Shown here piece by piece: positions 12,051-63,554 of a DNA stretch of 64,000 nucleotides. The DNA is taken from IMG/VR virus record IMGVR_UViG_3300025030_000041, positions 1 through 64,000 of that record. One strand, 5' to 3'. Numbering within the stretch: position 1 is the first letter of the stretch; each line of letters starts with the position of its first letter. Under the pieces are notes generated by a model, which saw only the letters and a program-made list of their open reading frames with translations, did not search any database and was not told the origin of the DNA. Made by a program: the position numbers and the translations under genes.

Positions 12051-12100
12051 GCCCCTAACAAAGTATAACTGAAAGAGATGTGCACTTACCGTTATAAGTA
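12051..12100 (-). mobile_element. Degenerate attC-like site
   Basis: gcccctaac...ccgttataagt core pair with the hairpin arms largely deleted. Confidence 0.4.
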
Positions 12101-12122
12101 ACATCAACATTTATGCACAACG

Positions 12123-12335
12123 CTACTTGACTGCTCCGAAATCAAAGTATGGAAGAATACGAAATTCACATTGATTTAGCTTGTAAATAGTATTTAGTTC
12201 TGCATCTTTTCTTTGATCTGCAAATTGCTCAATCACAGCAAGGGGGTCTTGTGTAATAATTAGAGTCTGCTTAGGCGTCTTTGAGTTAGTTGCTAAGTCA
12301 AATGTTTCGCCAATTTGAATTTCGAATTTACTCAT
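12123..12335 (-). CDS. Small cassette-borne hypothetical protein (likely start MSKFEIQ at 12335)
   Basis: ORF track 12123-12377; the upstream extension comes from the gttatgtac core box. Confidence 0.6.
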   Translation of the reverse strand: MSKFEIQIGETFDLATNSKTPKQTLIITQDPLAVIEQFADQRKDAELNTIYKLNQCEFRILPYFDFGAVK

Positions 12336-12371
12336 TGTTTTTAAATTAAATTTAGTGTTGATAAACCCCCA

Positions 12372-12440
12372 GTACATAACACTCTGTATAATAAATAAAA
12401 ATGTCTATTTTTACGAGTATTTTTTACTTCTCATACCCGC
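12372..12440 (-). mobile_element. Degenerate attC-like hairpin
   Basis: gtacataac core; arms gtataataaataaaaa / tttttacttctcatac; distal core lost. Confidence 0.4.
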
Positions 12441-12624
12441 AAAAAAAATATTGCGTCGCACGGGTGTTCGATTCTAAATCGAGATTCAATTTCCAATTTA
12501 GTTCAGTATATAACTTTCTCTATATTTAGTTCATACGCATCTCACTAAACTACACGATATTTATCGTTAACTGCTGTTTTAATTATGAGTAGCTTGTATT
12601 TCGTCTATACTTTTTTTCATATTC

Positions 12625-13026
12625 TTAAATGACGGGTATAGAAAAACCAAATGGAATAGTTTTAACATTGCCTTTTATTTTTAATTTAGCTGAGTCTGAC
12701 GATACTATCTTTTTTATCATGAGTGGATAAATAACCCCTTGTTTTAGACATGTACCTATTAAAGTCGTGGTATAATATGATAAAGGCGACCCACTAACAT
12801 TTCCTAAAAATGTTATAGTTATAGTATCAGAGTCTGTTAAAGTGTTTTTATCTATTAAAATTCCTGAAATAATTTCAGTTCCAGATAATCCACTTGACGG
12901 GTCATGACTATATTCTTTTATAGAATATCCATTTCCAAAATTTGATTGAGTAACTGGAGTTGGCCCATAATCAACATTTTCAACTATATCAATTATTTTA
13001 TAAAATGAATTTACAATATGATCCAT
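12625..13026 (-). CDS. Hypothetical (likely late/virion) protein
   Basis: ORF track; TAATAAATA upstream. Confidence 0.6.
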   Translation of the reverse strand: MDHIVNSFYKIIDIVENVDYGPTPVTQSNFGNGYSIKEYSHDPSSGLSGTEIISGILIDKNTLTDSDTITITFLGNVSGSPLSYYTTTLIGTCLKQGVIYPLMIKKIVSSDSAKLKIKGNVKTIPFGFSIPVI

Positions 13027-13209
13027 TATTTTTTAATTATTATTTTTTTGTTCTTATATTATTTATTAGAATTATCTGTTTAATTAAATTATTTTTTTTA
13101 ATCACTAAACGTATTTTCCGTTTTTCAAAATTTTAAAATGAATCTTTAAATATTTTTAACTAAATATATTAATAATCAATATTTTAAAGTTAATTGAATA
13201 TATATAATA

Positions 13210-13597
13210 GTTAGCAACAATAATTAGAACTGCGGTTCTGGAACAGTATAAGGTAATGTTTTAGAATAGCTTAGTTCCCATTCATCAGTTCCTTTTCCTA
13301 TTAATGTTGGGATGTGTCCAATCATATTAAATATCAACTGTTTTGGTTCAACAAAAACTACATCACTTCCAATGCAAGTGTGTTTTACTTCAACAATAGC
13401 GTCTTCACCCAACATGAGGTTTGTCTGGTTTTTGATTGACCAAAACTTAGTTCCTTTGGGAATTAATCTATTTTCTCCTATTTTAATTTCGTTCATAAAA
13501 TATTATTGTTGCTAACGAGGTATATATGCAATACCCTATTAAAGTTTATACTAAATTTTTATTTTTTGTGCAAGGGTACTGCATATATACCCAACCA
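13210..13597 (-). mobile_element. Integron-like gene cassette carrying ORF 13224-13496
   Basis: Perfect 15-bp inverted ends gttagcaacaataat (13210-13224) / attattgttgctaac (13502-13516), then hairpin ggtatatatgcaataccct...agggtactgcatatatacc. Confidence 0.75.
13224..13496 (-). CDS. Cassette-borne hypothetical protein
   Basis: ORF track; exactly fills the space between the inverted ends. Confidence 0.75.
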   Translation of the reverse strand: MNEIKIGENRLIPKGTKFWSIKNQTNLMLGEDAIVEVKHTCIGSDVVFVEPKQLIFNMIGHIPTLIGKGTDEWELSYSKTLPYTVPEPQF

Positions 13598-13616
13598 TTA
13601 GGTGCAATAAAAATTA

Positions 13617-13844
13617 CTACTTTTGTGCTATTGGATAGTCTGGTTCTCTGAATTTAAATCCTTTTGGTTTAATCAGAAAATCAGATTCGTCAGTTAGCAA
13701 GTGCCACTCACCATCATCAATTTTCATTTCAAATCCCATATCTCTCATACAGATATGTAATTGTTTCCCTTCTATTGTTTCAAGTGTAATTGAGGTATAC
13801 ACCTCTTTCAGAATAATCTGATTTTCTTTAGTTTCTACTTTCAT
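13617..13844 (-). CDS. Cassette-borne hypothetical protein
   Basis: ORF track; flanked by attaggtgcaataaaaattac / gtaatttttacagcttataac (15/21 complementary). Confidence 0.75.
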   Translation of the reverse strand: MKVETKENQIILKEVYTSITLETIEGKQLHICMRDMGFEMKIDDGEWHLLTDESDFLIKPKGFKFREPDYPIAQK

Positions 13845-13861
13845 ATTCCGTAATTTTTACA

Positions 13862-13963
13862 GCTTATAACAGCACCTAACAAAAATGGCTGCTACAAGCA
13901 TTGGTTTATAAATTGAAGTTTTATTTAAGCAGTCACTTCAGTTAGCTGCAAAAACATTATATG
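13862..13963 (-). mobile_element. attC-like hairpin
   Basis: gcttataac, arm gcacctaacaaaaatggctgct ... arm agcagtcacttcagttagctgc, aaaac-attatatg (GTT mutated to ATT). Confidence 0.75.
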
Positions 13964-14037
13964 TAATTTAAAAACTCACCATGTGCCAAATTTTACATTC
14001 TCTATCTAATTTAATTTGTTGCTCTTTAATTTTGCTT

Positions 14038-14232
14038 TTATAATATTTCATTGTTAAACTTAAAACTAAAAAGTCCTTCAAATGCATTTCTACCCGTTCC
14101 ATCGTTTGAAAATACAGTATAGTTAGTAAATTTTATATTACTCATATCTACATCAGAAAATTCTTTTTCTAATACAATTTTTAATTGCATAGGAGTAATT
14201 CTATTATCAAAATGTAATTTAGTTGATACCAT
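14038..14232 (-). CDS. Hypothetical early protein
   Basis: ORF track; first gene after the promoter at about 14277-14305. Confidence 0.55.
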   Translation of the reverse strand: MVSTKLHFDNRITPMQLKIVLEKEFSDVDMSNIKFTNYTVFSNDGTGRNAFEGLFSFKFNNEIL

Positions 14233-14276
14233 AGCATTATATTATATTATTAAATAGTTAAACAATAAAATTAAAT

Positions 14277-14305
14277 ACAATGTAAAATTAAGAAATAGTT
14301 TTGAC
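14277..14305 (-). promoter_or_regulatory. Early-type promoter driving the leftward cassette cluster
   Basis: Minus strand tcaaaactatttcttaattttacattgt shares aaaactatttctta with the 46591/49677 repeat. Confidence 0.55.
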
Positions 14306-14438
14306 ATTTAAAAATAAAATATTTAAATATTTTGTAACATATTGTCTTATAATACATTATTTTTATTAATTATATAAGAGTTTGGAGTTTTTCATATAAT
14401 TAAATTATGGAAATACTTATTAAAATGAGAATAAAAAT

Positions 14439-14465
14439 AAAACAATTTATCTTATTTTTTATAAG
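14439..14465 (+). promoter_or_regulatory. Putative middle promoter AAAACA-N15-TATAAG
   Basis: Same motif recurs upstream of several replication genes. Confidence 0.5.
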
Positions 14466-14494
14466 AGATTAGAAACTTAAAAACATTATTCATT

Positions 14495-15391
14495 ATGGCA
14501 AAAATAACAAATTTATCTGATTTAATTATAAAAAAGTTTGAGAATAGTACTGATGTTAAATTAGTAAACACGTTTGCTGATATTAGTGATTATATATCAA
14601 CGGGTAATTACTTATTAAATGCTCAACTTAGTGGAAGTTTATTAGGTGGAATACCTAATAATAGAATTACGACTTTAGCCGGTGATAGCGGGACAGGTAA
14701 AACATATTTAGCTCTTAATATTTGTAGGGAAGCCCAGAGAAATGGATATTTTATAGTATATGTAGATACTGAAGCTGCAGTATCAAAAGATATTATGATG
14801 GATTTTGGTATAGATACTGACACATCTAAATTATTATATGCTGGAATATCAAATATTGAAGACTTCGGATTACTTGGTAATAATATTATACAAATATCGA
14901 AAGACCAAAGAGCTAAGGGAGAGACTCCTAAGATATTAATTATATTAGATTCCCAAGGTATGCTAAATTCAAAAAAAGAAATAGATGATTTAAATAAAGG
15001 AAAGAATGCATCTGATATGGGAACTAGAGCTAAAGAATTAAGAAAATTATACAGAAATATAACTTATGAATTTAGTAATAACGGAATTACCTTTATTCCA
15101 TTAAACCACACTTACTGTTTAACGAGTGGGCATAATATTCAAATGGGAGATAATTCTTTAAAAGATATTAAAGATATACAAATTGGTGAATATGTAAAAA
15201 CGTTAGAAGGTAATAAAGAAGTAATAAATACATTTAATTTTGAAAATTTAGAGTTAATAGAATTAACTTTGTCAGATAATACAGTTGTTAAATGTACAAA
15301 AGACCATAAATTTTTAGTATCTAGTAATAATGAATTAATTTGGAAAAATGCAGATGAATTAAATGAAAATGATGAAATTTTAAGTATATAG
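14495..15391 (+). CDS. uvsX: UvsX/RecA recombinase N-fragment fused to a split-intein N part
   Basis: Walker A GDSGTGKT, YVDTE, ILDS, NHTY, then CLTSG... intein with block B CTKDH. Confidence 0.92.
   Translation: MAKITNLSDLIIKKFENSTDVKLVNTFADISDYISTGNYLLNAQLSGSLLGGIPNNRITTLAGDSGTGKTYLALNICREAQRNGYFIVYVDTEAAVSKDIMMDFGIDTDTSKLLYAGISNIEDFGLLGNNIIQISKDQRAKGETPKILIILDSQGMLNSKKEIDDLNKGKNASDMGTRAKELRKLYRNITYEFSNNGITFIPLNHTYCLTSGHNIQMGDNSLKDIKDIQIGEYVKTLEGNKEVINTFNFENLELIELTLSDNTVVKCTKDHKFLVSSNNELIWKNADELNENDEILSI
15116..15391 (+). mobile_element. Split intein N-fragment (91 aa)
   Basis: Starts at Cys208 (CLTSGHNI); TxxH block B; ends at the stop codon. Confidence 0.9.
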
Positions 15392-15417
15392 TAAATTATC
15401 TTAACTAATTAAAAAAA

Positions 15418-15543
15418 ATGAAAGACATGAATACAAAAAAAATTATTAAAAAACGTATAATTGAAAAACAAGAAAAAGTTTTTGATATTGAAGTAAAAGA
15501 TAGTCACCATTATTTTTTAGAAAACGGAGTGATTAGCCATAAT
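15418..15543 (+). mobile_element. Split intein C-fragment (42 aa)
   Basis: Basic N-terminus, block F VFDIEV, HN followed by Ser. Confidence 0.9.
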
Positions 15544-16524
15544 TCAGGTGGAATGTATGAAGCAACTAAGCAAGGCGGCGGGTGTTTAATACCAGGGACT
15601 AAGATATATACATTCAATAATGTATTAAAATCAATAGAAGGTGTTGAGTCTGGTGATTATGTTAAAACCTTATGTGGATATAAAGAAGTTTTAGAAACAT
15701 ATACATTTGAAAAATCTACTATAAAAATAGAATTTGAAGACACCACAAATATAATATGTTCAGAAGACCATCGTTTTTTAATTTCAGGAGACTATACAAT
15801 TGAAAGTAATTGGAAAAAAGCTAAAGACTTAGCTAATAATGAAAATATTTTAAAAATTGAAAATAATAATATTTTCAATTTAAAAATTAAAAATATTAAT
15901 CATTTATATACACAAAAAGTTCATGATATTAGTGTTAAAGATGTACATCATTATATATCTGAAACTGGTATAATAAATCATAATTCAGGAAATACCTATT
16001 CTGCATCAACTATTTTATTTTTATCTAAGTCATCTCTTAAAGAGGACGGCCAAACTAAAACGGGAATTGTAGTAAGATCTAAAACACAAAAAAATCGATT
16101 AGCTAAACCAATTGATATAGAATTCCATATTAGTCATATTAGCGGAATGAATCCGTATGTTGGATTACAAGATTATATTAGTTGGGAAAATTGTGGAGTA
16201 GTTAGAGGTACTCTACTTACTAAAAAAGAATTTGAAAAAGATAAGTCAAATAACCAAAAAACATATCATGAATTCGAACACAATAATGAAAAGTATTATG
16301 TAATTCCGTCTGATAAAGCTAGAAATATAGTTATAAGAGACGGATGTAAAGAAGTTCCATTTAAAAAACTATTTACATCAGAAGTATTTACAGAAAATGT
16401 TATTAAAGAATTAGATGAAAAAGTAATACGACCTAAATTTAAATATGATAAAATTAAAGACTTATTATCTAATGAATTAACTGAAGTTTTTGGTGATACT
16501 ACAGACGATGAATCAGACGAATAA
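15418..16524 (+). CDS. uvsX: UvsX C-fragment: intein C part, 13-aa extein, second mini-intein, C-extein
   Basis: VFDIEV...ISHN/S, then SGGMYEATKQGGG, CLIPG...INHN/S, then SGNTYSASTILFL...KNRLAKP. Confidence 0.92.
   Translation: MKDMNTKKIIKKRIIEKQEKVFDIEVKDSHHYFLENGVISHNSGGMYEATKQGGGCLIPGTKIYTFNNVLKSIEGVESGDYVKTLCGYKEVLETYTFEKSTIKIEFEDTTNIICSEDHRFLISGDYTIESNWKKAKDLANNENILKIENNNIFNLKIKNINHLYTQKVHDISVKDVHHYISETGIINHNSGNTYSASTILFLSKSSLKEDGQTKTGIVVRSKTQKNRLAKPIDIEFHISHISGMNPYVGLQDYISWENCGVVRGTLLTKKEFEKDKSNNQKTYHEFEHNNEKYYVIPSDKARNIVIRDGCKEVPFKKLFTSEVFTENVIKELDEKVIRPKFKYDKIKDLLSNELTEVFGDTTDDESDE
15583..15984 (+). mobile_element. Contiguous mini-intein (134 aa)
   Basis: C1 CLIPGTKI, block B CSEDH, block F VHDISV, terminal HN followed by Ser; no endonuclease domain. 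Confidence 0.9.
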
Positions 16525-16576
16525 GCAATTAATTTTATAAAAAACCTTAATGAATACTAAAAAATATTAAAATTAA

Positions 16577-17032
16577 ATGAAAAGAAAAATATTATTAATT
16601 TGTTTATCACTATTTTTAGTTGGAAAAACTTTTTCACGTAATACATTTAAAGATACTACAAACGTATTAAATAATTTAGAAACAATACTTTTTCATGTAA
16701 CTTTTTCTAAATTAAATTCAGAATTTAAAAATGAATTAAAATTTAGAGAAGATTTAGTTGTTGGTAATCTAAGTATAGCCGAATTATATTTTTCTAATAA
16801 AAAATCAAAATACTCTAAAATATCATTTTTATTTAAAAACGATATTTTCATAGGATATACTATATATTTTAGAAAAACAAAAAGCCTAAAATATTATAGA
16901 AAGATATATGGCCCTTGTATAGAAATTAGGAAAAATGATAATCAAATAATATGGGCAAGCTCTAGTGGTAAAATACGAGCTATAGTTTCATTAGAAAAAC
17001 GTAAAGAATTAACAATTTTATTTAAAAAATAG
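16577..17032 (+). CDS. Hypothetical exported protein
   Basis: Signal-peptide-like MKRKILLICLSLFLVG. Confidence 0.6.
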   Translation: MKRKILLICLSLFLVGKTFSRNTFKDTTNVLNNLETILFHVTFSKLNSEFKNELKFREDLVVGNLSIAELYFSNKKSKYSKISFLFKNDIFIGYTIYFRKTKSLKYYRKIYGPCIEIRKNDNQIIWASSSGKIRAIVSLEKRKELTILFKK

Positions 17033-17034
17033 AT

Positions 17035-17331
17035 ATGAGTTTAAGAAAAAGTGTTCCAATAAAATATCATTTAAATTTACATAAATACCTTCCAAATTAT
17101 CCTACTAAAAATGATTTAATATTTGATTTAATAGACAAATTATCTAAAAACGATAAGCTTAAGTTTTCAATATCAACTATAAACCAAATTTATAAAGAAA
17201 AATTAGAAGATGAGTCGTTTAAAACAAAAATAAAAAAATACATAAATGAATTAATTGAAGACAAAAAAATAATTCAAGACGGGAATTTTTTTATTTTAAC
17301 TGAGCCCCTTATAAATTCATTCATAGAGTAA
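17035..17331 (+). CDS. Hypothetical protein (possible winged helix)
   Basis: ORF track; operon context. Confidence 0.6.
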   Translation: MSLRKSVPIKYHLNLHKYLPNYPTKNDLIFDLIDKLSKNDKLKFSISTINQIYKEKLEDESFKTKIKKYINELIEDKKIIQDGNFFILTEPLINSFIE

Positions 17332-38191: not shown

Positions 38192-39628
38192 TTATTTATC
38201 TAATTCATTTAGCCTATCAGACAATGCCTTACGCAAAGCTTTATTTTCGAGTCTTTCATTATAAAAATAATTTAATATTTTTCGTGAGACTGAATCAATA
38301 TCCATCCTAAAATATGTATCAAATGCCGTTTTACATATTTTTCTATCTATTAGCTCCTCAATAGATAAATTAAGGCCTTTCCCTAAATATGTATCAGGTG
38401 ATATATTATTGCTACAAATTATGTTCGGATATAGACTAGAAAAGTCCTGACATACTACAGTTTTATAATATCCAGGAATCGGTTCCTTAACGAATGCGCC
38501 TTCATATTTTGGGCCACCTTCATTTTTTTGATACTTTGAGTTATATATTAGTTGTTTTTCTTCTTCTGTTTTTTCAGGTACTTTTAAATTTTGTTCTATG
38601 TATTTTCTAAATATTAGAATTTCACTTATAAATACTGGGCTATTATATTTATTAATATCACATATACTTAAGTTTACCATTTCAAATACAACATCAAGAA
38701 GAAATTTAGAGTCTTCTATTTCTTTTACTAAAATAGAGTCGATAGCATTGTATATTGCAAATTTGCGATAATTTGTTTTATACATTTCTAGTATATTTTC
38801 ATTATCATTTTTAAATTTTTTAACTCCAAGTACTTCTTTTGAAATATAGTCTAATGTATAATTCTCTACAATTTTTAATGGCGACCTGCTTCTAAATAGT
38901 TCAAGGTAGTCTATAACAGCAGTATGAGCTGGAACTAAATATTTTGTTACTCTTTTATTTGTTGCTATATTTTTTGTTGGATTTATTTTTAAATTTTCAC
39001 AGCGTTTCATTAGATATTGCCAGTCAAAATTTAAGAAATTCCATCCAGTTAATAGCGGTATTTTTGGTAGAAATTTATGAAAGAAATACTCTAACATTTC
39101 TATTTCAGTTTTGAACCAAAGATATTTTAAAGTATAGGTTTTTAAATTTGGATTACTTTTTTTAAGATATGTATTCATTTCATTTTCCATATCTTGTTCT
39201 TGACTTCTCAAGTCTTCTCGACACGACAATATATATGCAATATTAGATTCGTTTACTACTGATATTAGAAGAACTTGGTATTTTGCTTCTGATGGTTCTG
39301 GGAATTCATTATTTTCTCCAGTTTCAGTCTCAATATCACAATAATATTTTTTAGGAGTATTAAATTCTGACATTTTATTTTTTTCATCTAGTGTGAGATT
39401 ATTATATAAGAATTCTTCTTGTCTAAAACGTCCTAAATACTCTGTAGGTTTTTTTCTTACATTTTTATTATCCCAACTTTTTAATCCAGTATTTTCTTCA
39501 CAATATTCGTAGTTATATAAATCAGAACTTGGTATATTTTTAATAATAAAGTCTATTTCTTTATTTTTATTAATGTATGATATATACATTTTACTTTTAT
39601 ACTTATTAAATTCAACTCCTACTACCAT
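38192..39628 (-). CDS. 43: Family B DNA polymerase, N-terminal half (exonuclease plus motif A; gp43A-like)
   Basis: DIET (ExoI), GWNFLNFD (ExoII), YNAID (ExoIII), DFSSLYP (motif A); ends before motif B. Confidence 0.9.
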   Translation of the reverse strand: MVVGVEFNKYKSKMYISYINKNKEIDFIIKNIPSSDLYNYEYCEENTGLKSWDNKNVRKKPTEYLGRFRQEEFLYNNLTLDEKNKMSEFNTPKKYYCDIETETGENNEFPEPSEAKYQVLLISVVNESNIAYILSCREDLRSQEQDMENEMNTYLKKSNPNLKTYTLKYLWFKTEIEMLEYFFHKFLPKIPLLTGWNFLNFDWQYLMKRCENLKINPTKNIATNKRVTKYLVPAHTAVIDYLELFRSRSPLKIVENYTLDYISKEVLGVKKFKNDNENILEMYKTNYRKFAIYNAIDSILVKEIEDSKFLLDVVFEMVNLSICDINKYNSPVFISEILIFRKYIEQNLKVPEKTEEEKQLIYNSKYQKNEGGPKYEGAFVKEPIPGYYKTVVCQDFSSLYPNIICSNNISPDTYLGKGLNLSIEELIDRKICKTAFDTYFRMDIDSVSRKILNYFYNERLENKALRKALSDRLNELDK

Positions 39629-46446: not shown

Positions 46447-46590
46447 AACACTTTTTTTGAAACAATATATTTGAAAACTCATACAATGTTTTATAAAATT
46501 TTAGCGTTTTTAGAAATAATGTGTATAATTAAATAATATAATGTATTAAATGCCAATCATTTATAGTATACTATTATATTTAATTTGGGA

Positions 46591-46641
46591 AAATATTTTA
46601 ATATATTAAAACTATTTCTTATTTTTGTATTAAATATAACG
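46591..46641 (+). promoter_or_regulatory. 51-bp promoter platform (copy 1) ending in the cassette core TAAC
   Basis: 49/51 identical to 49677-49727; contains TAttTTTG (Bacteroidota -7 element). Confidence 0.8.
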
Positions 46642-46730
46642 GCCGGTACTTTATGCCCAGTTTGCCATACGGACACTTAACATTTAGCAGTAGAGTTGAT
46701 GACAAACTTGTATAAAGTAATTGTTATAAA
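46633..46730 (+). mobile_element. attC-like hairpin
   Basis: aatataac-ggccgg-tactttatgcccagtttgccat ... atgacaaacttgtataaagta-att-gttataaa. Confidence 0.75.
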
Positions 46731-46798
46731 ATCGGTGTGGTTAGTTTAGTAGAATGTTAATTAAAAATTTAAACAAAACTATTTAAAACAAAAAAAAG

Positions 46799-47212
46799 AT
46801 GACGACAAATAATTTAAGAGAAAAAACAGTTTTACAAATTACAGAAATTGTAAAAGAATATTGTAAAACTGCAGAACCAACAAATGTGTATTTGGCTTTC
46901 AAAAAAGAGGTGGACAAACCATTGATGATTGAAACAAAATACCCAATACCTAATGAAAATATTACAGTAATGATTTCGGATATTAGAAAAGATTGGCAAT
47001 TACCATTAGCAGGAACAAAGGATATTGGAAACCCAAAATTAAAAGAGATGAGCCGAGAAGATTTTGAAAAAACATTTGATATATTATCATATACTGTACA
47101 GGAAGAAAGCCAAATAATTATGAAAGTAATTGATAAATTGGGATTACATAAATGGGAACATGAAGGAAAATTAAAACAGTTTCATTACTATCAAGGAAGT
47201 TATAACAAATAG
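46799..47212 (+). CDS. Cassette-borne hypothetical protein
   Basis: ORF track; follows the hairpin. Confidence 0.7.
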   Translation: MTTNNLREKTVLQITEIVKEYCKTAEPTNVYLAFKKEVDKPLMIETKYPIPNENITVMISDIRKDWQLPLAGTKDIGNPKLKEMSREDFEKTFDILSYTVQEESQIIMKVIDKLGLHKWEHEGKLKQFHYYQGSYNK

Positions 47213-47276: not shown

Positions 47277-47340
47277 CTTTTTGCCGAGCCTGTGTTATAA
47301 GGCGAAGCGAACAGTTGGTTTTTCGCCAATGGCTTATAAT
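47277..47340 (+). mobile_element. Half attC-like site plus 47-bp empty mini-cassette
   Basis: tttttgccgagcctgt-gttataag...cttataat; no ORF between the inverted cores. Confidence 0.55.
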
Positions 47341-47460
47341 GGTGTCAGGCTTGGCGAAGTGATTAAACCTGAAGCTAAATAGAATAACTAAACTTTAAAA
47401 TTAAGAACAAATGACAAATAGAATTACTGAACATTCATTTTGCCAAACACATGTTAGTGG
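47333..47460 (+). mobile_element. attC-like hairpin containing the start codon of ORF 47411
   Basis: cttataat-ggtgtca-ggcttggcgaagtg ... cattttgccaaacac-at-gttagtgg. Confidence 0.7.
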
Positions 47461-47746
47461 CAGTTTATCTTTGGAAACGATTGCTGATTATGTTACAAAA
47501 AAAGATTTATCTGTGCATAAAAAAATATGTAATTTGTGGTTAAAATCAGGAAACAAAGCAGAAGATTTTCCTAAACTACCGCCTTGTTGGATGGATGTTG
47601 AAATAACATTAAAAAATGGTAAAAAATATAAATCTTTTTTAGTGAGTATAAATAATTGTGGTGATACTCAATTCGTGATTAATAGAATGTTTAAAGAAAG
47701 GATTTATTTAGATATGGATGAAGTTGTTAGTTGGGAGTTCGTTTAA
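47411..47746 (+). CDS. Cassette-borne hypothetical protein
   Basis: Ends gttagtggcagttta / taaattgcaactagc are near-complementary. Confidence 0.7.
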   Translation: MTNRITEHSFCQTHVSGSLSLETIADYVTKKDLSVHKKICNLWLKSGNKAEDFPKLPPCWMDVEITLKNGKKYKSFLVSINNCGDTQFVINRMFKERIYLDMDEVVSWEFV

Positions 47747-47808
47747 ATTGCAACTAGCAGTTTTGCGTATAAAAAATCGTTTTAATGTTTTTTATACGAT
47801 GTTAGCAG
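47744..47808 (+). mobile_element. Short attC-like hairpin
   Basis: caactagc-agttttg-cgtataaaaaa ... ttttttatacg-at-gttagcag; perfect 11-bp stem. Confidence 0.7.
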
Positions 47809-47873
47809 TATGTATTATTTTTGTTTTTACCTTATTAAAAAAATAACTATGGAAGTATTTATCAAAAAAACAT

Positions 47874-48215
47874 ATGACTATAAGTGATATACCTGAAAAA
47901 TGGGTAATTATAAAAATAGATGGCCCTATTGGAACATTTTATAAAGTATTTAGTACTTGGGCAGGTGGGTATTTAGGTACAGATAAGTGGAAGCTCAATT
48001 CTGGAATTGATAAAGTTAATACGGATGATGAGTATTATTATTTTATTGGGTTTAGTGGAAGCTGCTATAAGTGTCACAAAAAAACATATGGATTAGCTAC
48101 TCAATTTGGGTTTAGAGTTTTAAATAATATTGTAGAAAAAAGCGATAGGAAGATTAGCGTATTAGAAGATAAGCCAGATTGGGAGTCTTTTTTTAATTTA
48201 ATAAATAATTTTTAA
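47874..48215 (+). CDS. Conserved phage hypothetical protein
   Basis: PEKWVIIK...W.GGYL..D.WKLNSGI...G.SGSCYKC, a family common in large phages. Confidence 0.7.
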   Translation: MTISDIPEKWVIIKIDGPIGTFYKVFSTWAGGYLGTDKWKLNSGIDKVNTDDEYYYFIGFSGSCYKCHKKTYGLATQFGFRVLNNIVEKSDRKISVLEDKPDWESFFNLINNF

Positions 48216-49597: not shown

Positions 49598-49676
49598 CGT
49601 AATCATTTATTATTTAGTAGATTGATTATCAATTAATTATATTTACTTGTTATATTTAGTTCAAAAATAAAGTACT

Positions 49677-49727
49677 AAATATTTTAATATATCAAAACTA
49701 TTTCTTATTTTTGTATTGAATATAACG
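49677..49727 (+). promoter_or_regulatory. 51-bp promoter platform (copy 2) with upstream TATCAATTAATTATAT box
   Basis: 49/51 identical to 46591-46641; box at 49627-49642. Confidence 0.8.
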
Positions 49728-49818
49728 TTTTGCAGGTAGGCGATAGTGAGGCTTACCACAAAGTTTAAATCAAAGCACTCAGGCTCATAACGGCAATATC
49801 GCCTACCTGATGTTAGGT
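49720..49818 (+). mobile_element. attC-like hairpin
   Basis: atataac-gttttg-caggtaggcgata ... tatcgcctacctg-at-gttaggt; perfect 13-bp stem. Confidence 0.8.
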
Positions 49819-49864
49819 GTCTGTAAAAAAATAAATTTAGTGTGGCAATTAAACAATTTACAAA

Positions 49865-50092
49865 ATGAAAATTAAGAAACTTATCAGCCAACACCGCAGG
49901 GATTTCACCGCCTTAATGGAATGTGAATTTTGCCAACATCAAGAAATGGATAATTCAGGTTATGATGACCGATATTATCACGACAATGTAATACCAAATA
50001 TGAAGTGTAAAAAATGCGGTGAATCAACGATAAGTAAAGGCGGTGAAATTGAAAGGACCCCAACTAAATATCCAGAGGGATTCCAAATTTGA
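49865..50092 (+). CDS. Cassette-borne Zn-ribbon protein
   Basis: CEFC...CKKC. Confidence 0.75.
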   Translation: MKIKKLISQHRRDFTALMECEFCQHQEMDNSGYDDRYYHDNVIPNMKCKKCGESTISKGGEIERTPTKYPEGFQI

Positions 50093-50125: not shown

Positions 50126-50677
50126 ATGATTGATTACAAAATAATATCAGATTCAATTAATTACTATGAAAGTAAAGGGTTTATTAGGATTGAAACCCCT
50201 TGGACTGTTTCAGAGTATATTGATAATTTAACTAAGCCAAAAGACATGTTATCTTTTCAATTAAAACATAACAGTAAGTGCTTAGTAGCTTCTGGCGAAC
50301 AGAGTTTTTTATACCTATATTTAAAAGACTTCTTACCAAAGGGACAATTTCAAACAACAACACCATGTTTTAGATTTGAAAGTTTTGACTATTCACACAC
50401 TAAGTATTTTATTAAAAATGAACTAATAAAAACCGATGTTGTAAATAATGCTGAACTTGATAAAGTAGTAGAATATTGTTTTAATTTTTTGAAAGGATGT
50501 ATACCTGAAATAGAAATAATTCAAACTAGCATAGGGTTTGATATTGAGTATAAAGGTAATGAATTAGGTTCATACGGAATAAGAGAAAATGAGTTTTTGA
50601 AATGGATATATGCAACTGGTTGTGCTGAACCAAGATTGAGTAAAATAATTAATTTGTATAAAAATGGGTTATCATAA
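50126..50677 (+). CDS. Stand-alone class II aminoacyl-tRNA-synthetase-like catalytic domain
   Basis: ASGEQSF, motif 2 PCFRFE, ELGSYG, motif 3 ATGCAEPRL; only 183 aa. Confidence 0.7.
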   Translation: MIDYKIISDSINYYESKGFIRIETPWTVSEYIDNLTKPKDMLSFQLKHNSKCLVASGEQSFLYLYLKDFLPKGQFQTTTPCFRFESFDYSHTKYFIKNELIKTDVVNNAELDKVVEYCFNFLKGCIPEIEIIQTSIGFDIEYKGNELGSYGIRENEFLKWIYATGCAEPRLSKIINLYKNGLS

Positions 50678-50909
50678 AAGAAAAATAACAAAAGGAGTTT
50701 TAGGTGAGTATTCTAAAATACAAGAAGAAATGGAAGAACTAAAAGATGCGGTTGAATAAGAAGATAAAGTTCTTCAAATATGCGAATTGACCGATTTAAT
50801 TGGGGCTATTGAAAGTTTTTCTGAACTAAAATTTGGATTAAATTTAGAGGATTTGAAGAAATTTTCTGATAAAACAAAATCCGCATTTAAAGAAAAAAAG
50901 AGAGGGTAG
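50664..50909 (+). pseudogene. MazG-like NTP pyrophosphatase interrupted by an in-frame TAA
   Basis: MGYHKRKITKGVLGEYSKIQEEMEELKDAVE*EDKVLQICELTDLIGAIE...; TAA at 50757-50759. Confidence 0.65.
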
Positions 50910-51163
50910 AAAAAAAAAAGAAAAAGATTCACAGGCAGGAACTCTATTTGGGAACGAAATGTAGCACTTGTTTATAATGGCTGACGATATGTTTAAACTA
51001 TAATAAAATCAGTATTATGAACGAAAAAATTATAAAGATTTGTAAACAAAACTTATATACACTATGATTTACACCTTTTTTATGAAGCGCTAATTAAATT
51101 TAAAATAATGAAACAAATATTATTTTTTTTAATATAATAATTTTTAAAATTATTCAAATGTAG

Positions 51164-58601: not shown

Positions 58602-58655
58602 TCATTAAGTATATACCTTATAACAACTACTCAAATAATACCTATATAAAAATAA

Positions 58656-60198: not shown

Positions 60199-60200
60199 CT

Positions 60201-60848
60201 ATGAAAATATGGTGTATAAGTGATACTCATAATGAGCATAATGAATTAGAAATTCCAAATAATGTTGATATGGTAATTTGCGCAGGAGATGCTGGAACCT
60301 GCCGAAACCCAGCATTAAATGAAGCTCCATTAAAAGACTTTTTTAATTGGTATAAAAATTTACCTATTAAATATAAAGTATATTCTGCTGGAAATCATGA
60401 TACTAGTATAGACACTGGCTTAATTTTAAGAGGAGATATTCCAGAAGAAATTATTTATTTAGAACATGAGTTAAAAGAAATTAGTGGGTTAAATGTATTT
60501 GGTAGTCCATATACTCCATCATTTGGACATGGCTGGGGGTTTAATGTACCAAGAAATAAGCTTAAACCGTATTGGGATGAAATACCTAGTAATACTGATA
60601 TATTAATAACTCATGGACCGCCTAAAGGTATATTAGATTTTACTATTACGACTAATGAGTCAGTCGGGTGTGAATTTTTATATGAAAAGATAATGGAAAT
60701 ACAACCAAAATACCATATATTTGGTCATATTCACGAAGACGGTGGCAAAACTAAAAAAATAGACAATTGTAATACTGAATTTATTAATGCCTCAGTGTTA
60801 AATTTATATTATAGAAAATCAAATAATGGAGTAATTATCGAAATATGA
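60201..60848 (+). CDS. Metallophosphoesterase
   Basis: SDTH, AGD, GNHD, THGPP, GHIHE. Confidence 0.88.
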   Translation: MKIWCISDTHNEHNELEIPNNVDMVICAGDAGTCRNPALNEAPLKDFFNWYKNLPIKYKVYSAGNHDTSIDTGLILRGDIPEEIIYLEHELKEISGLNVFGSPYTPSFGHGWGFNVPRNKLKPYWDEIPSNTDILITHGPPKGILDFTITTNESVGCEFLYEKIMEIQPKYHIFGHIHEDGGKTKKIDNCNTEFINASVLNLYYRKSNNGVIIEI

Positions 60849-61717
60849 AACAGAAAATAATTCAGTTTGACCAAAAACAATTATCTAATTTAATTTCATG
60901 TATAGAATCGTTTAATAAATTAGGTGAAACTACTAAGTTTACATTAAGCCTGGATAAAGATAATGATTATTTAATATTACTATCTGGTACAGGAAAAAAT
61001 TGTGTTAGAACCATTAAATTTAATCTTAATAATTATTCAAGTAACTATATTAAAGACACTAATACTGGATTATTTTCTTCTACTTTAAATCTTAATAAAG
61101 AATCTATAAAGATACTAAACTTTATTAAGAAAACTATGAAAAAGGAATTATTAAATTTTATACTTAATTATGATTCTGATAGTAATGAGCTTAGATTTAT
61201 TTCATTAATATTAGATAGTTCTACTCATAAATTTAATTATAATATTAGTTTAGGATATTCTGAATATTTTCCAATTGATAATCAAAAAATGTTAAATTTT
61301 TTAAATTGGGAAAACCTAAATATAAAAGATTTATATGCCGAACTATTATTAAATGCCGAACATATAAATGATTTAATAGACTCAATAGATATTATAAAAA
61401 CAACAAGAGCCGGAGATGATGATAACGTGATAATTTTATCTATTGACAATAAATTATTATCAGTAAAAGATGAAAAAATTAAATCTGATATAATATTTAA
61501 AAATTTTGATATAAAAACATTTAAGAATGAATCGTTTTCTATTAAAATAAAAATTGATGACTTTATTAAAATTACGGATTGTATTAATAAGTTTAAACTA
61601 CTTGATAAAAACTATATAAAAATAAATATATACAGAAACACTCTTCTTTTAACTTATCAAGATTTATATGACTATAATAATATAGATAATACAATACTAA
61701 GTTCAGTTATTGCATAA
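60845..61717 (+). CDS. Hypothetical protein, possibly sliding-clamp-like
   Basis: Two-fold alpha/beta pattern over 290 aa; weak. Confidence 0.35.
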   Translation: MKQKIIQFDQKQLSNLISCIESFNKLGETTKFTLSLDKDNDYLILLSGTGKNCVRTIKFNLNNYSSNYIKDTNTGLFSSTLNLNKESIKILNFIKKTMKKELLNFILNYDSDSNELRFISLILDSSTHKFNYNISLGYSEYFPIDNQKMLNFLNWENLNIKDLYAELLLNAEHINDLIDSIDIIKTTRAGDDDNVIILSIDNKLLSVKDEKIKSDIIFKNFDIKTFKNESFSIKIKIDDFIKITDCINKFKLLDKNYIKINIYRNTLLLTYQDLYDYNNIDNTILSSVIA

Positions 61718-61719
61718 CT

Positions 61720-62124
61720 ATGAAATTTATAAAAAGTATAAATGATTTTACAAAAAATAAAATTTATTATACATCAAAAAACTTTGTTACATTAAACGGA
61801 TGTACCAATGCTATGACGCAATACCCACTGGGTCTTGGATTCAGCTCTTTTTTTAAAATAGTTAGTGTTAAAGGTAATTCTATTTTTATAACTACCCCAA
61901 CATATTTTTATAATAATGCTATATTTGGTAAATTACATGATTCACCAATTATATTAGACTTCACTCTACTAGAATCTTTAAATATAAAAATAATTGAAAT
62001 TAATAATATCAAGTCTTTTCCTTTTAAATACACAGACCCTGATGGATTTTATATGGCAATTGAATATAACGAACATGAAATGACTAAATTTAAATTAAAA
62101 ACCTTAATTAAATATAAAAAATAA
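61720..62124 (+). CDS. Hypothetical protein
   Basis: ORF track. Confidence 0.6.
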   Translation: MKFIKSINDFTKNKIYYTSKNFVTLNGCTNAMTQYPLGLGFSSFFKIVSVKGNSIFITTPTYFYNNAIFGKLHDSPIILDFTLLESLNIKIIEINNIKSFPFKYTDPDGFYMAIEYNEHEMTKFKLKTLIKYKK

Positions 62125-62133
62125 TTAATTTAA

Positions 62134-62201
62134 TATCAATTAGTTATATTTTTATTTAAAAATAGGTGAAACAAATTAAAGATAAATTAATATATTTGCA
62201 G
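62134..62201 (+). promoter_or_regulatory. Bacteroidota-type promoter with upstream TATCAATTAGTTATAT box
   Basis: TAtaTTTG at 62191-62198; box at 62134-62149. Confidence 0.6.
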
Positions 62202-62236
62202 TATAACAATCATTATTAACTTAAAACAATTAAAAA

Positions 62237-62458
62237 ATGAAAACAAACAAACTGAAAACTGCTGTTAAAGCCGTTGCAAAAGTAACAAAAGGAAGTAGTG
62301 ACGTAGTTCGTAAGATTAAAGTAGGTGATTATACTAAGATTGCTAGAGCGACTGGGTATGACTACAGCCATGTATGGAGAGTTATTAATGGAGAGTCTAG
62401 TAATCCATCAGGAGAAATTATGAAATACACCGCTACGGTTATTAAAAACAGAAAATAG
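62237..62458 (+). CDS. Small HTH DNA-binding protein
   Basis: YTKIARATGYDYSHVWRVING helix-turn-helix. Confidence 0.7.
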   Translation: MKTNKLKTAVKAVAKVTKGSSDVVRKIKVGDYTKIARATGYDYSHVWRVINGESSNPSGEIMKYTATVIKNRK

Positions 62459-62478
62459 TGAGTATTTTTTAAATTTAT

Positions 62479-62511
62479 AAAAATAGCCTAATTTTTAATT
62501 AGGCTATTTTT
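62479..62511 (+). terminator. Intrinsic terminator
   Basis: aaaaatagcctaat...attaggctattttt. Confidence 0.8.
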
Positions 62512-62873
62512 ATTTTAATGCTTATACGTATACCAATAGTTAAATTCAAATGATTATAGAACTAATAATTTTCTTTTTAAAAGTTTGGTCTATTTTATGG
62601 ACTATACTTTTAGTTTTAATAATATATTCTAGTGCTGTGTTAAACTTAAAAAGACTAGAATTTAACCTTAATTTGAAAACCTGTGCGGAATTATCGCTGT
62701 ATATTACTTCAATATACACATGGTTTTTATAAAAAAGATAAAAATACCAACTATTGATTATAAATAGCAAGTTGCAACGGAAACTTAATGGTGTCAAAAA
62801 TGTCATTTCAGAGTATTATCATAGATATTTTCTTTACTACGTTATATATAGGGGTGATTTAAAACTATAAAAA

Positions 62874-63116
62874 ATGATAACAGAAAAAGAATACTTAAAA
62901 GCAAAAATGATTGTTGAAGCATATGAATGTGAGCAATTGAATAAACCTGCTAGTATAAGCCATATGAAGTGCTGCGACAACCAAGATATAGAAATATTTT
63001 ATAAAAACACCAGTAATAAGGATGGGAGTGGAAGAATGGGTGTTACTCATAAGATATTTAAATGCAAGAATTGTGTTATGCAATCGGCTTTTATTTGTCA
63101 AATGTTTAATAATTAA
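62874..63116 (+). CDS. Hypothetical protein, probably cassette-derived
   Basis: EQLNKPASISH resembles the hairpin-encoded QLNISEVSH of the next gene. Confidence 0.55.
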   Translation: MITEKEYLKAKMIVEAYECEQLNKPASISHMKCCDNQDIEIFYKNTSNKDGSGRMGVTHKIFKCKNCVMQSAFICQMFNN

Positions 63117-63141
63117 ATACTTAAAAAATAAAAACAGAATT

Positions 63142-63429
63142 ATGTTAGAAAACGAAAACTTGAATGAACCACAAAAAACGCAATTGAATATAAGTGAGGT
63201 TAGCCACAATTGTATTTGTTGCGGAAAAGAAATAAAGAAACTTGATGGACTGCCAAAAGATAAGGATTGGGAAGGTATGTGGAATGGTGGAATAGTTGAA
63301 AAGATAAGTGCTGGGTATGGCAGTTTACTTGATGGAGATATGTATGTTTTGGCTATATGCGATGACTGTGTAAAGTTGAAACAGCTAAAATACGTTGGTA
63401 ACTATATGTTCCCAGACAATTGTGACTAA
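63142..63429 (+). CDS. Cassette-borne Zn-finger protein (start MLENENL)
   Basis: CICC...CDDC; bounded by gttagccacaattgt (63199) / acaattgtgactaac (63416), 14/15 complementary. Confidence 0.7.
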   Translation: MLENENLNEPQKTQLNISEVSHNCICCGKEIKKLDGLPKDKDWEGMWNGGIVEKISAGYGSLLDGDMYVLAICDDCVKLKQLKYVGNYMFPDNCD

Positions 63430-63554
63430 CTGATGACACTAACAGTCAGGTGGGGATTAAATGCACCGTACTTTCACTTGACGATAAGCTTCATTAGACA
63501 CAAGATAGCTTCAATGTGACACAAGCCCCCACTTGCTGTTATTGTATGTTATGG
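63424..63554 (+). mobile_element. attC-like hairpin
   Basis: gactaac-tgatg-acactaacagtcaggtgggg ... ccccacttgctgttattgt-at-gttatgg. Confidence 0.78.

Follow-up and report, generated by a model that had tools for sequence, protein, structure and literature searches.

Why should a giant T4-like phage carry hairpins of differing sequence but shared architecture, each heading a small accessory gene? The initial annotation of the 64,000-nucleotide stretch analyzed here (the window; positions 1 to 64,000 of IMG/VR record IMGVR_UViG_3300025030_000041) proposed that such genes are acquired and shuffled as integron-like cassettes by an IntI-like tyrosine recombinase encoded outside the window. To test this, we modeled the hairpins, walked the contig beyond the window, and compared the locus with other phages and bacteria. 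The integron-like reading is supported, though recombination itself is inferred rather than demonstrated. A recombinase gene of the same phage probably shuffles the cassettes, which would give it an integron-like gene-swapping system of a kind not yet described.

A structured family of hairpin sites

All seven hairpins described as clear in the initial annotation exist and match covariance models of one family, with the architecture TAAC-G, spacer, stem, loop, stem', T-GTTA and lengths of about 88 nt or about 125 nt. Model R1 was built from 15 elements of three phages and recovered five of the window hairpins when searched with filters off. Model R2 was built without any window sequence and recovered the remaining two. 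Neither model matched about 190-200 kb of related T4-like control loci at E<=1. In contrast, R1 gave 48 matches across the window and the loci designated L053, L058, L059 and L060, a few of them duplicates in overlapping loci or weaker opposite-strand echoes, and 38 more in loci L062-L064. The family fills arrays of small ORFs in at least four other phage contigs. Apart from a few weaker opposite-strand echoes of the same sites, every match is on the coding strand and every one is upstream of the recombinase.

The conserved structure is supported by covariation. Alignment of 15 sites from three phages with MAFFT, followed by RNAalifold, gives 22 pairs, of which 15 show compensatory double changes. 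On 72 sites, 94.2% of cells are paired compared to 66.4% in shuffles, and the covariation score is 0.649 compared to 0.166, with slid controls reaching at most 0.114. While alignment A3 was fitted to the model, which inflates its pair counts, alignment A1 is independent of that. There are 165 G.T pairs on the coding strand against 27 A.C, and two G.T pairs are conserved, in 65/72 and 58/64 sites.

Some details of the initial annotation required refinement. The 5' core is TAAC-G (TAAT or TAGC in three window copies) and the 3' spacer is 1-2 nt, usually T. In the long class, the start codon of the ORF lies in the loop. Plain TAAC and GTTA are not enriched in intergenic DNA, whereas TAACG is, with 19 observed against 8 expected, and with 21 sense against 4 antisense occurrences in a wider set that also counts sites within 12 nt of a gene end. 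The proposed remnants near 5185, 12051, 50970 and 63199 receive only weak model support (13.7-20.3 bits) and those near 12372 and 12566 receive none, while the one at 47277 is a different hairpin that overlaps H4'. The features are summarized in Table 1.

Table 1. Hairpin sites, cassettes and associated elements in the window. Positions marked "contig" are those of the phage contig, including the part beyond the window.
Position	Strand	Feature	Description	Support
13513..13600	-	H1, short-class site (88 nt)	TAAT-GGTTG-stem-loop-stem'-C-GTTA; heads the cassette carrying ORF 13224-13496	R1 95.6 bits (13503-13610); DNA fold z-score -4.5; homologous to H8 at contig 68122-68245 and to sites in L059/L060
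13867..13959	-	H2, short-class site	True cores are the outer TAAT/GTTA; inner CTAAC/GTTAG pair inside the stem; heads the cassette with ORF 13617-13844	R1 77.3 bits (13857-13969); loop homologous to that of L060 7276-7365; inner GTTAGGTGC complementary to the GCACCTAAT preceding H1
13210..13596	-	Cassette A2, intact	H1, then GTTA-GCAACAATAAT, a 90-aa ORF (13224-13496), then ATTATTGTTGC-TAAC	Ends 15/15 complementary (13210-13224 versus 13502-13516); no Pfam or PHROG match
13597..13955	-	Cassette A1	H2 plus the 75-aa ORF 13617-13844, ending at the TAAT core of H1	Inner R' against the R'' of H1: run of 5, 7/10
13198..13213	-	Array-end site	TAAC-TATTATATATAT with no hairpin; same sequence as the site directly upstream of the recombinase gene	The same junction of TAAC and TATTATATAT marks the start of homology in L062/L063
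46571..46640	+	Promoter module	TAnnTTTG -7 motif, ending in TATAAC; one of five copies in the phage	51-nt repeat, 96% identical to 49677-49727, identity ending at TATAAC-G; further copies at contig 66.7, 75.2 and 76.7 kb
46637..46726	+	H3, short-class site	Directly after the promoter module; followed by ORF 46799-47212	R1 61.7-61.8 bits (46627-46736)
47337..47456	+	H4', long-class site (120 nt)	TAAT core; start codon of ORF 47411-47746 in the loop; 3' arm and GTTA translated (Val-Ser)	R2 66.4 bits (47327-47466)
47341..47758	+	Cassette B2	H4' plus a 111-aa ORF, ending in AAATTGCAAC-TAGC (decayed core)	Ends 8/10 complementary, or 12/15 (47453 versus 47744) as in the initial annotation
47755..47804	+	H5, very short site	TAGC core, GTTTTG spacer, AT-GTTA; followed by a TAnnTTTG motif and ORF 47874-48215	R1 36.6 bits (47745-47814), R2 36.7 bits; same spacer family as H6, W76280, L059 4388 and L060 7276
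49649..49726	+	Promoter module	Flanked by GTTATATTTA ... TGAATATAAC; cassette-like ends but no ORF	Inverted repeat of 22 nt, 86% complementary; also the repeat shared with 46571..46640
49723..49815	+	H6, short-class site	After the promoter module; followed by ORF 49865-50092 (phrog_14808)	R1 74.8 bits (49713-49825); DNA fold z-score -3.1
63068..63205	+	Decayed long-class site	3' arm and GTTA in codons 14-21 of ORF 63142-63429	R2 20.3 bits
63142..63429	+	Cassette ORF	95 aa, zinc-ribbon-like; bracketed by GTTAGCCACAATTG and CAATTGTGACTAAC	13/14 complementary (63199-63212 versus 63417-63430)
63427..63551	+	H7, long-class site (125 nt)	Nested TAAC/GTTA pairs	R2 56.6 bits (63417-63561)
12046..12104	-	Possible remnant site	TATAAC-GG ... 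T-GTTAGG, between ORF 12123-12377 and the ligase gene	R1 16.8 bits, E about 1.2; weak
5119..5198	-	Possible remnant site		R1 16.8 bits, E about 1.3; weak
50965..51027	+	Possible remnant site	TTATAATGG..., next to a 75-nt repeat shared with contig 68.6 kb	R1 13.7 bits, E about 5; very weak

A phage-encoded recombinase and the cassette arrays

The initial annotation predicted that cassettes are bounded at TAAC/GTTA cores, that end complementarity is a footprint of circular cassettes, and that an IntI-like tyrosine recombinase lies outside the window. All three predictions hold. A 271-aa XerA/IntI-like tyrosine recombinase is encoded in the same phage 13 kb beyond the window, at the 3' end of the main array (contig 77341-78156). 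It matches PF00589 (3e-38) and PF13495, and its best NCBIfam matches are XerA_Arch 'tyrosine recombinase/integron integrase' (194.6 bits) and TIGR02249 integron integrase (170.7 bits). As read from the translation, the motifs GLRVSE, GKGRKDR, HTLRHS, GHSS and EIYTH appear to fit the usual Arg, Lys, His-x-x-Arg, His and Tyr catalytic positions. However, the protein is XerA-like and lacks the IntI-specific insertion.

The ends of each unit are complementary (GTTA-N6-GT ... ATT-N6'-TAAC). The flank of R'(n) compared with the flank of R''(n+1) averages 7.2/10 matches, and a perfect run of at least 5 occurs in 64% of 61 adjacent pairs, 1.9% of 781 non-adjacent pairs, and 0% within one hairpin. In the window itself, only four units have clearly complementary ends; H3, H5, H6 and H7 have no good partner, so several window copies may be fixed or decaying. 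Comparison of near-identical phages provides further support, though this rests on one pair of metagenome assemblies. L062 and L063 share an identical recombinase and 97% identity over 6.85 kb, but have otherwise unrelated arrays. Homology starts exactly at TAAC, 56 nt upstream of the recombinase ATG. Cassettes of 512 bp (99.4% identical) and 246 bp (98.8%) are bounded by TAAC on both sides and sit at different array positions.

Homologous recombinases in Bacteroidota chromosomes are adjacent to sites of the same family. Of 46 R1 matches in 80 bacterial loci, 45 lie on the minus strand downstream of the recombinase. In L125 (Chitinophaga), the one locus where positions were compared, each match directly follows a plus-strand ORF, in line with canonical integron polarity. 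The phages show the reverse: the boundaries of each unit lie at the TAAC on the 5' side of its hairpin in the direction of transcription. The hairpin therefore belongs to the ORF downstream of it, and the folded strand is the coding strand. In addition, while the initial annotation invoked the RYYYAAC/GTTRRRY consensus of attC sites, by visual inspection of a few sites the consensus beyond the TAAC/GTTA cores is only sometimes present, and there are no conserved extrahelical bases.

On the basis of these findings, we consider it probable that the hairpins are the recombination sites of an integron-like cassette system encoded by the phage itself. Read on the coding strand, a cassette comprises G plus a 3-5 nt spacer, a 5' arm of about 20 nt, a loop (holding the start codon in the 125-nt class), the 3' arm followed by T-GTTA-N6-GT, the ORF, and ATT-N6'-TAAC. 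We propose that this strand folds when single-stranded. TAAC(G)/(T)GTTA would form an R box of 5-6 bp in the array and about 14 bp in an excised circle, because N6 and N6' belong to the same cassette; an asymmetric internal loop would act as the central spacer and the conserved stem base (GSGTATAT) as the L box. The recombinase would cut within TAAC and exchange strands between two sites, excising cassettes as circles and inserting them at the array-end site TAAC-TATTATATAT or at secondary TAAC sites in the hyperplastic regions. That would explain why elements are dispersed at 12-14, 46.6-47.8, 49.7 and 63.4 kb in the window and at 66.7-68.2 and 75.3-77.3 kb beyond it. The action of this recombinase on these sites, the single-stranded coding-strand substrate, the exact cut within TAAC, and resolution by replication are all inferred. 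The phage is uncultured and there is no experimental or read-level evidence of circles or junctions. The recombinase lacks the IntI-specific domain that contacts extrahelical bases in integrons and the hairpins have no conserved bulged bases; recognition must therefore differ or may not use single-stranded DNA at all. It is also unusual for a recombination site to overlap coding sequence, as occurs in the long class.

Alternative explanations

Two alternatives are very unlikely. The first is that these are PeSL-type regulatory cassettes, as described in T4-like phages, in which conserved intergenic stem-loops and early promoters serve as patches of homology for general homologous recombination without a site-specific enzyme. 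In line with this, the phage is T4-like, the elements sit in hyperplastic regions, a promoter module is repeated five times, some hairpin cores are 90-95% identical between loci and could support homologous exchange, and PeSL mini-circles are documented in RB49 and phi1 (PMC2839356, PMC4122927). However, breakpoints fall on a 4-nt core with unrelated sequence on one side and no shared tract across the junction, and cassette-specific complementary N6 ends are not expected from homologous exchange. The sites lie next to a tyrosine recombinase in every phage array examined, and also in bacteria. Furthermore, only 2 of 7 window sites follow a promoter motif, and ordinary terminators with short loops exist separately in the window.

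The second is that these are ordinary cassettes captured from a host integron and moved only by a host IntI. Clusters of attC sites occur in virulent phages, including a Polaribacter phage, and recombine with IntI1 (PMC9892861), and related sites occur in Bacteroidota chromosomes. Against this, the phages encode their own recombinase at the array end in at least five independent contigs, and their cassette ORFs have the opposite polarity to L125, the one bacterial array examined in detail. Likewise, phage promoter modules carry cassette-like ends, and the arrays differ between phages whose flanks are 97% identical.

It is slightly less likely still that the hairpins are RNA elements in 5' untranslated regions or between cistrons, such as processing sites of the RNase III type, stabilizers or translational operators, with only an incidental link to gene shuffling. 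The coding strand is the better-folding strand and carries conserved G.U pairs, two sites start near the predicted transcription start, and the start codon lies in the loop in the long class; the lower stem, internal loop and upper stem may also resemble phage T7 RNase III sites. However, in L125, the one bacterial array where ORF and site positions were compared, the conserved strand is antisense to the ORFs, and all but one match in the other bacterial loci are on the same minus strand; the conserved feature is therefore probably not a sense-RNA structure. An RNA role does not explain breakpoints at TAAC, cassette relocation or linkage to a recombinase, and there is no Rfam match, though a secondary RNA role in the phages is not excluded. 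Finally, although TAAC, GTTA and AT-rich palindromes are common in a genome with 25% G+C and three of the seven hairpins have unremarkable DNA folding z-scores, chance hairpins without common origin or function are refuted by model scores reaching 95 bits, the absence of matches in control loci, strong covariation, and conservation across phages that extends to loop sequences.

Comparison with known systems

The phage arrays most closely resemble integrons (IntI, attC, attI), especially sedentary chromosomal integrons and the group with intI co-oriented with the cassettes. In both, arrays of single-ORF cassettes are separated by imperfect hairpins of variable sequence and conserved architecture, with AAC/GTT triplets invariant at the base of the hairpin (TAAT or TAGC cores in three window copies aside), an unpaired central spacer, and site lengths in discrete classes. 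Unit boundaries lie at the core, cassette ends become fully complementary once the cassette is circularized, and a Xer/IntI-clade tyrosine recombinase is encoded at one end next to a hairpin-less site. The phage system differs in that its recombinase is 265-271 aa and lacks the IntI-specific insertion. Instead of conserved extrahelical bases, there are two conserved G.T pairs and a 5-6 nt versus 1-2 nt internal loop, and the conserved TAAC/GTTA core is flanked by ATT-N6 and N6-GT. In the phages, the ORFs lie on the folded strand, so the site precedes its ORF and can hold its start codon; promoter-only modules exist, and elements are also dispersed outside the main array. The system falls outside strict IntI/attC membership.

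Three other systems share particular features. Clusters of attC sites lacking an integrase (CALINs) place attC-like sites with small cassettes in the genomes of lytic phages, including phages of Bacteroidota (Qi et al. 2023, PMC9892861). Those clusters have 2-4 sites, no phage recombinase and canonical polarity, whereas here arrays reach more than 20 sites and the phages encode the recombinase. The PeSL cassettes occur in the same phage type, likewise in hyperplastic regions, with small ORFans flanked by conserved stem-loop motifs, repeated promoter modules and proposed mini-circles (PMC2839356, PMC4122927). PeSLs, however, are sigma-70 promoter plus terminator composites exchanged by homologous recombination between the -10 element and the ATG, while here the breakpoints lie at a 4-nt core, the ends are complementary, the hairpins have large loops and a dedicated recombinase is present. 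XerA, the archaeal single Xer recombinase acting on dif (PDB 4a8e, 5hxy), is the best sequence match to the phage recombinase over its full length, with the same domain pair and no insertion, but it resolves chromosome dimers at a single 28-bp duplex dif site and has no arrays and no hairpins.

Hairpin sites and genomic context of the window phage

The viral contig IMGVR_UViG_3300025030_000041 is 246,115 bp long, and window coordinates equal contig coordinates. It represents a T4-like myovirus with about 25% G+C. Recognizable genes include a T4-type portal, a split family-B DNA polymerase, a Rad50-like ATPase, a DNA ligase, a DnaB-like helicase, PhoH, and a late sigma factor. A -7 promoter motif, probably of the TAnnTTTG type, points to a host in Bacteroidota, as do bacterial relatives of the recombinase described below. 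A megablast search of 32 kb of the window against GenBank phages found nothing. Relatives found through the ligase, PhoH, and portal are either identical copies, which are uninformative, or only 45-57% identical proteins in phages of 33-40% G+C with no such hairpins.

The seven hairpins located by the initial annotation (H1-H7) are present where it placed them, and the complementarity it noted between the ends of gene units is correct. Of the further positions it listed as remnants, four have weak support and three have none. Ordinary intrinsic terminators with short loops occur elsewhere in the window, so the long-loop hairpins are a separate class. The plain words TAAC and GTTA are not enriched in intergenic DNA. 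In contrast, TAACG is enriched, with 19 observed against 8 expected, and is strongly biased to the coding strand, 21 against 4, in a wider count that also takes in sites within 12 nt of a gene end. A raw list of inverted repeats was swamped by AT-rich noise, while searches with Rfam at gathering threshold and with ARAGORN found nothing.

We built a covariance model (R1) from 15 sites of three phages. R1 scores H1, H2, H6, H3, and H5 at 95.6, 77.3, 74.8, 61.7, and 36.6 bits. A second model (R2), built without any window sequence, scores the hairpin sites H4' and H7 at 66.4 and 56.6 bits. Model E-values are rough and several window copies look decayed. About 190-200 kb of related T4-like loci gave no match at E<=1. 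A strong G+C-rich hairpin (DNA fold z-score -2.9) overlaps the 5' arm of H4' and would exclude it; within this hairpin, GTTATAAGG ... GGCTTATAAT looks like an almost empty unit with complementary ends.

The cassette ORFs yielded no matches to Pfam or PHROGs, apart from phrog_14808 and a histidyl-tRNA-synthetase-like family for one ORF each. A second assembly (Ga0209727_1000206, 73.9 kb) is 99.9-100% identical to the window in every stretch compared, which together cover 25694 to contig position 75505; by coordinate arithmetic, the shared block should run to about 84.2 kb. Left of a start codon in the window, however, this assembly is completely unrelated and has gp32, an ExoX-like gene, and a different 277-aa gene. 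This is a strain-level mosaic junction at a plain gene boundary, and it is unrelated to the hairpins. The RecA/UvsX-like gene appears as two adjacent ORFs that both carry intein-splicing matches and share internal repeats, and seems to be invaded or split by an intein. The family-B DNA polymerase is encoded in two pieces about 33 kb apart on opposite strands, the second of which has a faint intein match.

Coordinates of features in the window contig and related loci. L055 (ENA contig), L056 (compared at the mosaic junction), L058 (a stretch of the window contig), L059, and L063 (other array-bearing contigs) are loci used for comparison.
Feature	Coordinates	Strand	Remarks
Tyrosine recombinase gene	contig 77341-78156		271 aa; directly downstream of six small co-oriented ORFs
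Hairpin-less array-end site TAAC-TATTATATAT	window 13198-13213	-	Identical copy of the site directly upstream of the recombinase gene
ORF of unit with complementary ends	window 13224-13496		Ends 15/15 complementary
ORF of unit with complementary ends	window 13617-13844
ORF of unit with complementary ends	window 47411-47746
ORF of unit with complementary ends	window 63142-63429
ORF with phrog_14808 match	window 49865-50092
ORF with histidyl-tRNA-synthetase-like match	window 50126-50677
Strain-level mosaic junction	window 25687 (compare L056 1-5788)		No hairpin site
RecA/UvsX-like gene in two ORFs	window 14495-16524
Family-B DNA polymerase, two pieces	window 38192-39628; contig 72816-74519 (L058 7913-9616)	-; +
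G+C-rich hairpin overlapping H4'	window 47282-47356
Two short ORFs of 31 and 49 codons	window 50664-50909		In one frame, separated by a single TAA; by eye, they read like one small helical protein (possibly MazG-like) interrupted by a stop; searched separately, neither piece matched Pfam
Stretch resembling a tRNA T-arm (GGTGTTCGATTC...)	window 12440-12485	+	In the spacer between two minus-strand ORFs; ARAGORN calls no tRNA, so it may be a tRNA remnant
Intergenic repeat of 75 nt	window 50990-51065; contig 68620-68690		Contains a conserved 16-17-codon mini-ORF (MNEKIIKICKQ...) of unknown function
Repeat at contig start	window 1-126; L055 20193-20318		An ENA contig extends past the window start into a 1024-aa ORF and repeats the first 126 nt of the window at 99% identity about 50 nt further on, so the contig start lies inside a repeat
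Gad2-family (anti-Gabija) gene	contig 71074-71652 (L058 6171-6749)		A few kb from the main array of the window phage
ART-PolyVal ADP-ribosyltransferase-like cassette	L063 3195-3773		Weak match
Two halves of one hairpin site	L059 7450-7480 and 7730-7755		Separated by a 69-aa ORF; either a gene sits inside the loop or an insertion has split the site

A recombinase linked to arrays of hairpin sites

Walking along the contig by exact-protein look-ups identified a tyrosine recombinase outside the window. It has the integrase catalytic domain and the SAM-like N-terminal domain. Its best curated family matches are the XerA 'tyrosine recombinase/integron integrase' model and the integron integrase model (TIGR02249), both below their cut-offs. 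The protein aligns end to end with archaeal XerA structures. In contrast, its residues 180-203 (24 aa) face residues 180-249 (70 aa) of the Vibrio integron integrase VchIntIA, and the TIGR02249 match is split in two. The IntI-specific domain, which spans about 35-50 aa between the conserved patches of the catalytic domain, is therefore missing. The motifs GLRVSE, GKGRKDR, HTLRHS, GHSS, and EIYTH, read in the translation, appear to fit the usual catalytic positions.

Thousands of proteins of 265-271 aa are at least 54% identical to this recombinase, but no phage genome in GenBank has one closer than 36.5%. In contigs of 296 kb, 219 kb, 83 kb, and 29 kb, the homologue sits at the 3' end of a co-oriented array of about 10 to more than 20 small ORFs. 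In a 42-kb contig (L064), it follows a few small ORFs with one site. In total, the recombinase lies next to an array in six loci (L058, L059, L060, L062, L063, L064). Intergenic spacers are 60-400 nt and hold the same hairpins, with the same spacer families (GGTTG, GTTTTG, GGCCG) and even homologous loops. Site lengths fall into two classes of about 87-93 nt and about 124-129 nt. BLASTP of array ORFs between three phages found almost no shared cassettes.

The structure of the sites is supported by covariation. An alignment that is independent of the models gives 22 consensus pairs by RNAalifold, 15 of them with compensatory double changes, and TAAC and GTTA are invariant. On 72 model-aligned sites, 94.2% of cells are paired against 66.4% in shuffles, and the covariation score is 0.649 against 0.166 in shuffles, with slid controls reaching at most 0.114. 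This larger alignment is fitted to the model and hence leans towards the structure. The consensus has no conserved bulge; instead, there is an asymmetric internal loop and two conserved G.T pairs. Apart from a few weaker opposite-strand echoes of the same sites, all phage matches are on the coding strand, and all are upstream of the recombinase gene.

Cassette ends, boundaries, and polarity

We compared the ten bases after GTTA of one site with the ten bases before TAAC of the next. They are complementary, with a mean of 7.2 of 10 matches. A perfect run of at least five occurs in 64% of 61 adjacent pairs, compared to 1.9% of non-adjacent pairs and none for the two sides of the same hairpin. 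The pattern is GTTA-N6-GT ... ATT-N6'-TAAC, with a conserved T.G pair at the seventh position. Each ORF-bearing unit therefore carries its own private pair of complementary ends, which would close into a 14-bp helix if the unit were circular. In the window, this holds for the four units listed in the table, whereas H3, H5, H6, and H7 have no good partner.

The initial annotation proposed comparing related phages for breakpoints at the core. Two contigs from different samples, L062 and L063, encode the identical recombinase and are 97% identical from 56 nt upstream of its start codon through 6.85 kb downstream, yet their arrays are otherwise unrelated. The homology begins exactly at a TAAC, and the six bases to its left differ. 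Two cassettes are shared, one of 512 bp at 99.4% identity and the other of 246 bp at 98.8%. Both are bounded by TAAC on both sides and lie at different positions; the first is second from the recombinase in one phage and about 9 kb away in the other. While this evidence comes from one pair of contigs, and all sequences are metagenome assemblies, it indicates that the mobile unit runs from the G after one TAAC to the next TAAC, with the hairpin at the 5' end of its cassette. Two further observations fit this. In the long class, the start codon lies in the loop, and GTT-AGY is read as Val-Ser in several units. In addition, the five copies of the promoter module end at TATAAC and then diverge; a scan for the module sequence found only the two window copies. 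For these reasons, crossover at G|TTA, the integron convention in the direction of transcription, was rejected. A second recombinase represented by several contigs (P0045) showed no array variation. Ten isolates of one phage, Polaribacter phage Freya_1 to Freya_10 (MT732463-MT732472), differ in length from 43,978 to 48,920 bp; the integrase gene (35% identical to ours) shifts from position 65 to position 4162, so there is variable DNA next to a related recombinase.

Homologues at 41-48% identity occur in Flavobacterium, Algoriphagus, Chitinophaga, Pseudopedobacter, and other genomes, and they too lack the IntI insertion. The phage-trained model finds sites in about a third of these loci. Of 46 matches, 45 are on the strand opposite the recombinase and downstream of it. 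In L125, the Chitinophaga locus in which positions were compared, each match directly follows a plus-strand ORF. That is the canonical integron arrangement, with the modelled strand corresponding to the attC bottom strand. In the phages, the ORFs and the recombinase gene are on the modelled strand instead. This argues against a sense-RNA structure as the conserved feature, and also ties the site family to the recombinase family in two different geometries. The excess of G.T over A.C pairs (165 against 27), and the two G.T pairs conserved in about 90% of sites, mark the modelled strand as the one that folds.

Inferred mechanism and relationship to known systems

By analogy with integrons, the recombinase would bind the R box (TAAC/GTTA) and the conserved stem base of the folded strand. 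It would cut within TAAC and exchange one strand between two sites, and replication would resolve the product. The site directly upstream of the recombinase gene has the form TAAC, four to six bases, then ATATAT, and has no hairpin. It is conserved in four phages and is where homology begins in L062 and L063. We read it as the counterpart of attI. These steps are inferred; nothing here shows catalysis, single-stranded substrates, or circles.

It seems somewhat more likely than not that these loci represent a previously unrecognized branch of integrons in Bacteroidota and their phages. Its integrase would be a short XerA-like enzyme without the IntI domain, and its sites would use TAAC/GTTA cores with conserved G.T pairs in place of extrahelical bases. 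On this reading, virulent jumbo phages have adopted the system with the cassette ORFs flipped onto the folded strand, such that each recombination site doubles as the 5' leader, and sometimes the first codons, of its gene. This would give lytic phages an autonomous device for acquiring and reordering early or counter-defence genes. The cassettes are almost all ORFans, so the arrays are a catalogue of candidate phage accessory and counter-defence genes. The Gad2-family gene and the weak ADP-ribosyltransferase-like match in one L063 cassette both hint that these regions hold counter-defence genes.

Such a system, with arrays of 5-25 cassettes, would be a dedicated mechanism for the plasticity of hyperplastic regions in large lytic phages, which has until now been ascribed to homologous or illegitimate recombination. 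It would also show that cassette recombination at folded sites does not need the IntI-specific domain, which bears on how integrases evolved from Xer recombinases. The compact site and the recombinase may also be useful as a recombination tool.

Other known systems fit the observations less well. The PeSL cassettes of T4-like phages (PMC2839356, PMC4122927) are composites of a strong early promoter and a terminator stem-loop, exchanged by homology between the -10 element and the ATG. Here, a promoter motif lies upstream of only H3 and H6 and downstream of H5, loops are 25-75 nt, no run of T was seen after the stems read, and breakpoints lie at TAAC. Xer/dif modules (pdif-type) are flanked by 28-bp duplex sites with two 11-bp arms and a 6-bp spacer. 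No such conserved site was seen in the sequences read or among the repeats found, and the conserved units are instead 88- and 125-nt hairpins. IS200/IS605-type elements have a Y1 HUH transposase (TnpA) and subterminal hairpins at both ends. Each unit here has a single hairpin, and no such transposase family appears in the precomputed Pfam lists covering nearly all of the 85 kb read. Terminators, invertons, and CRISPR-repeat mimics were rejected on anatomy.

In the full-text literature searched, no paper describing this system was found. Integrons are regarded as bacterial devices, and the phage examples known so far are captured fragments or small attC clusters without an integrase. The present system is inferred to work like an integron. 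It has a tyrosine recombinase of the Xer/IntI clade encoded next to the array, imperfect hairpins with conserved structure, variable sequence, and AAC/GTT at the base, and cassettes bounded at the core with complementary ends. However, it departs from integrons in three defining features, namely the IntI domain, the extrahelical bases, and the ORF polarity. In integrons, the ORF lies upstream of its own attC on the strand opposite the recombined strand, and cassettes are promoterless and read from Pc. In these phages, sites and ORFs share a strand, the site precedes or overlaps the ORF start, and promoter modules are interspersed. The system likewise differs from the attC clusters reported in virulent phages, which lack a phage integrase (PMC9892861).
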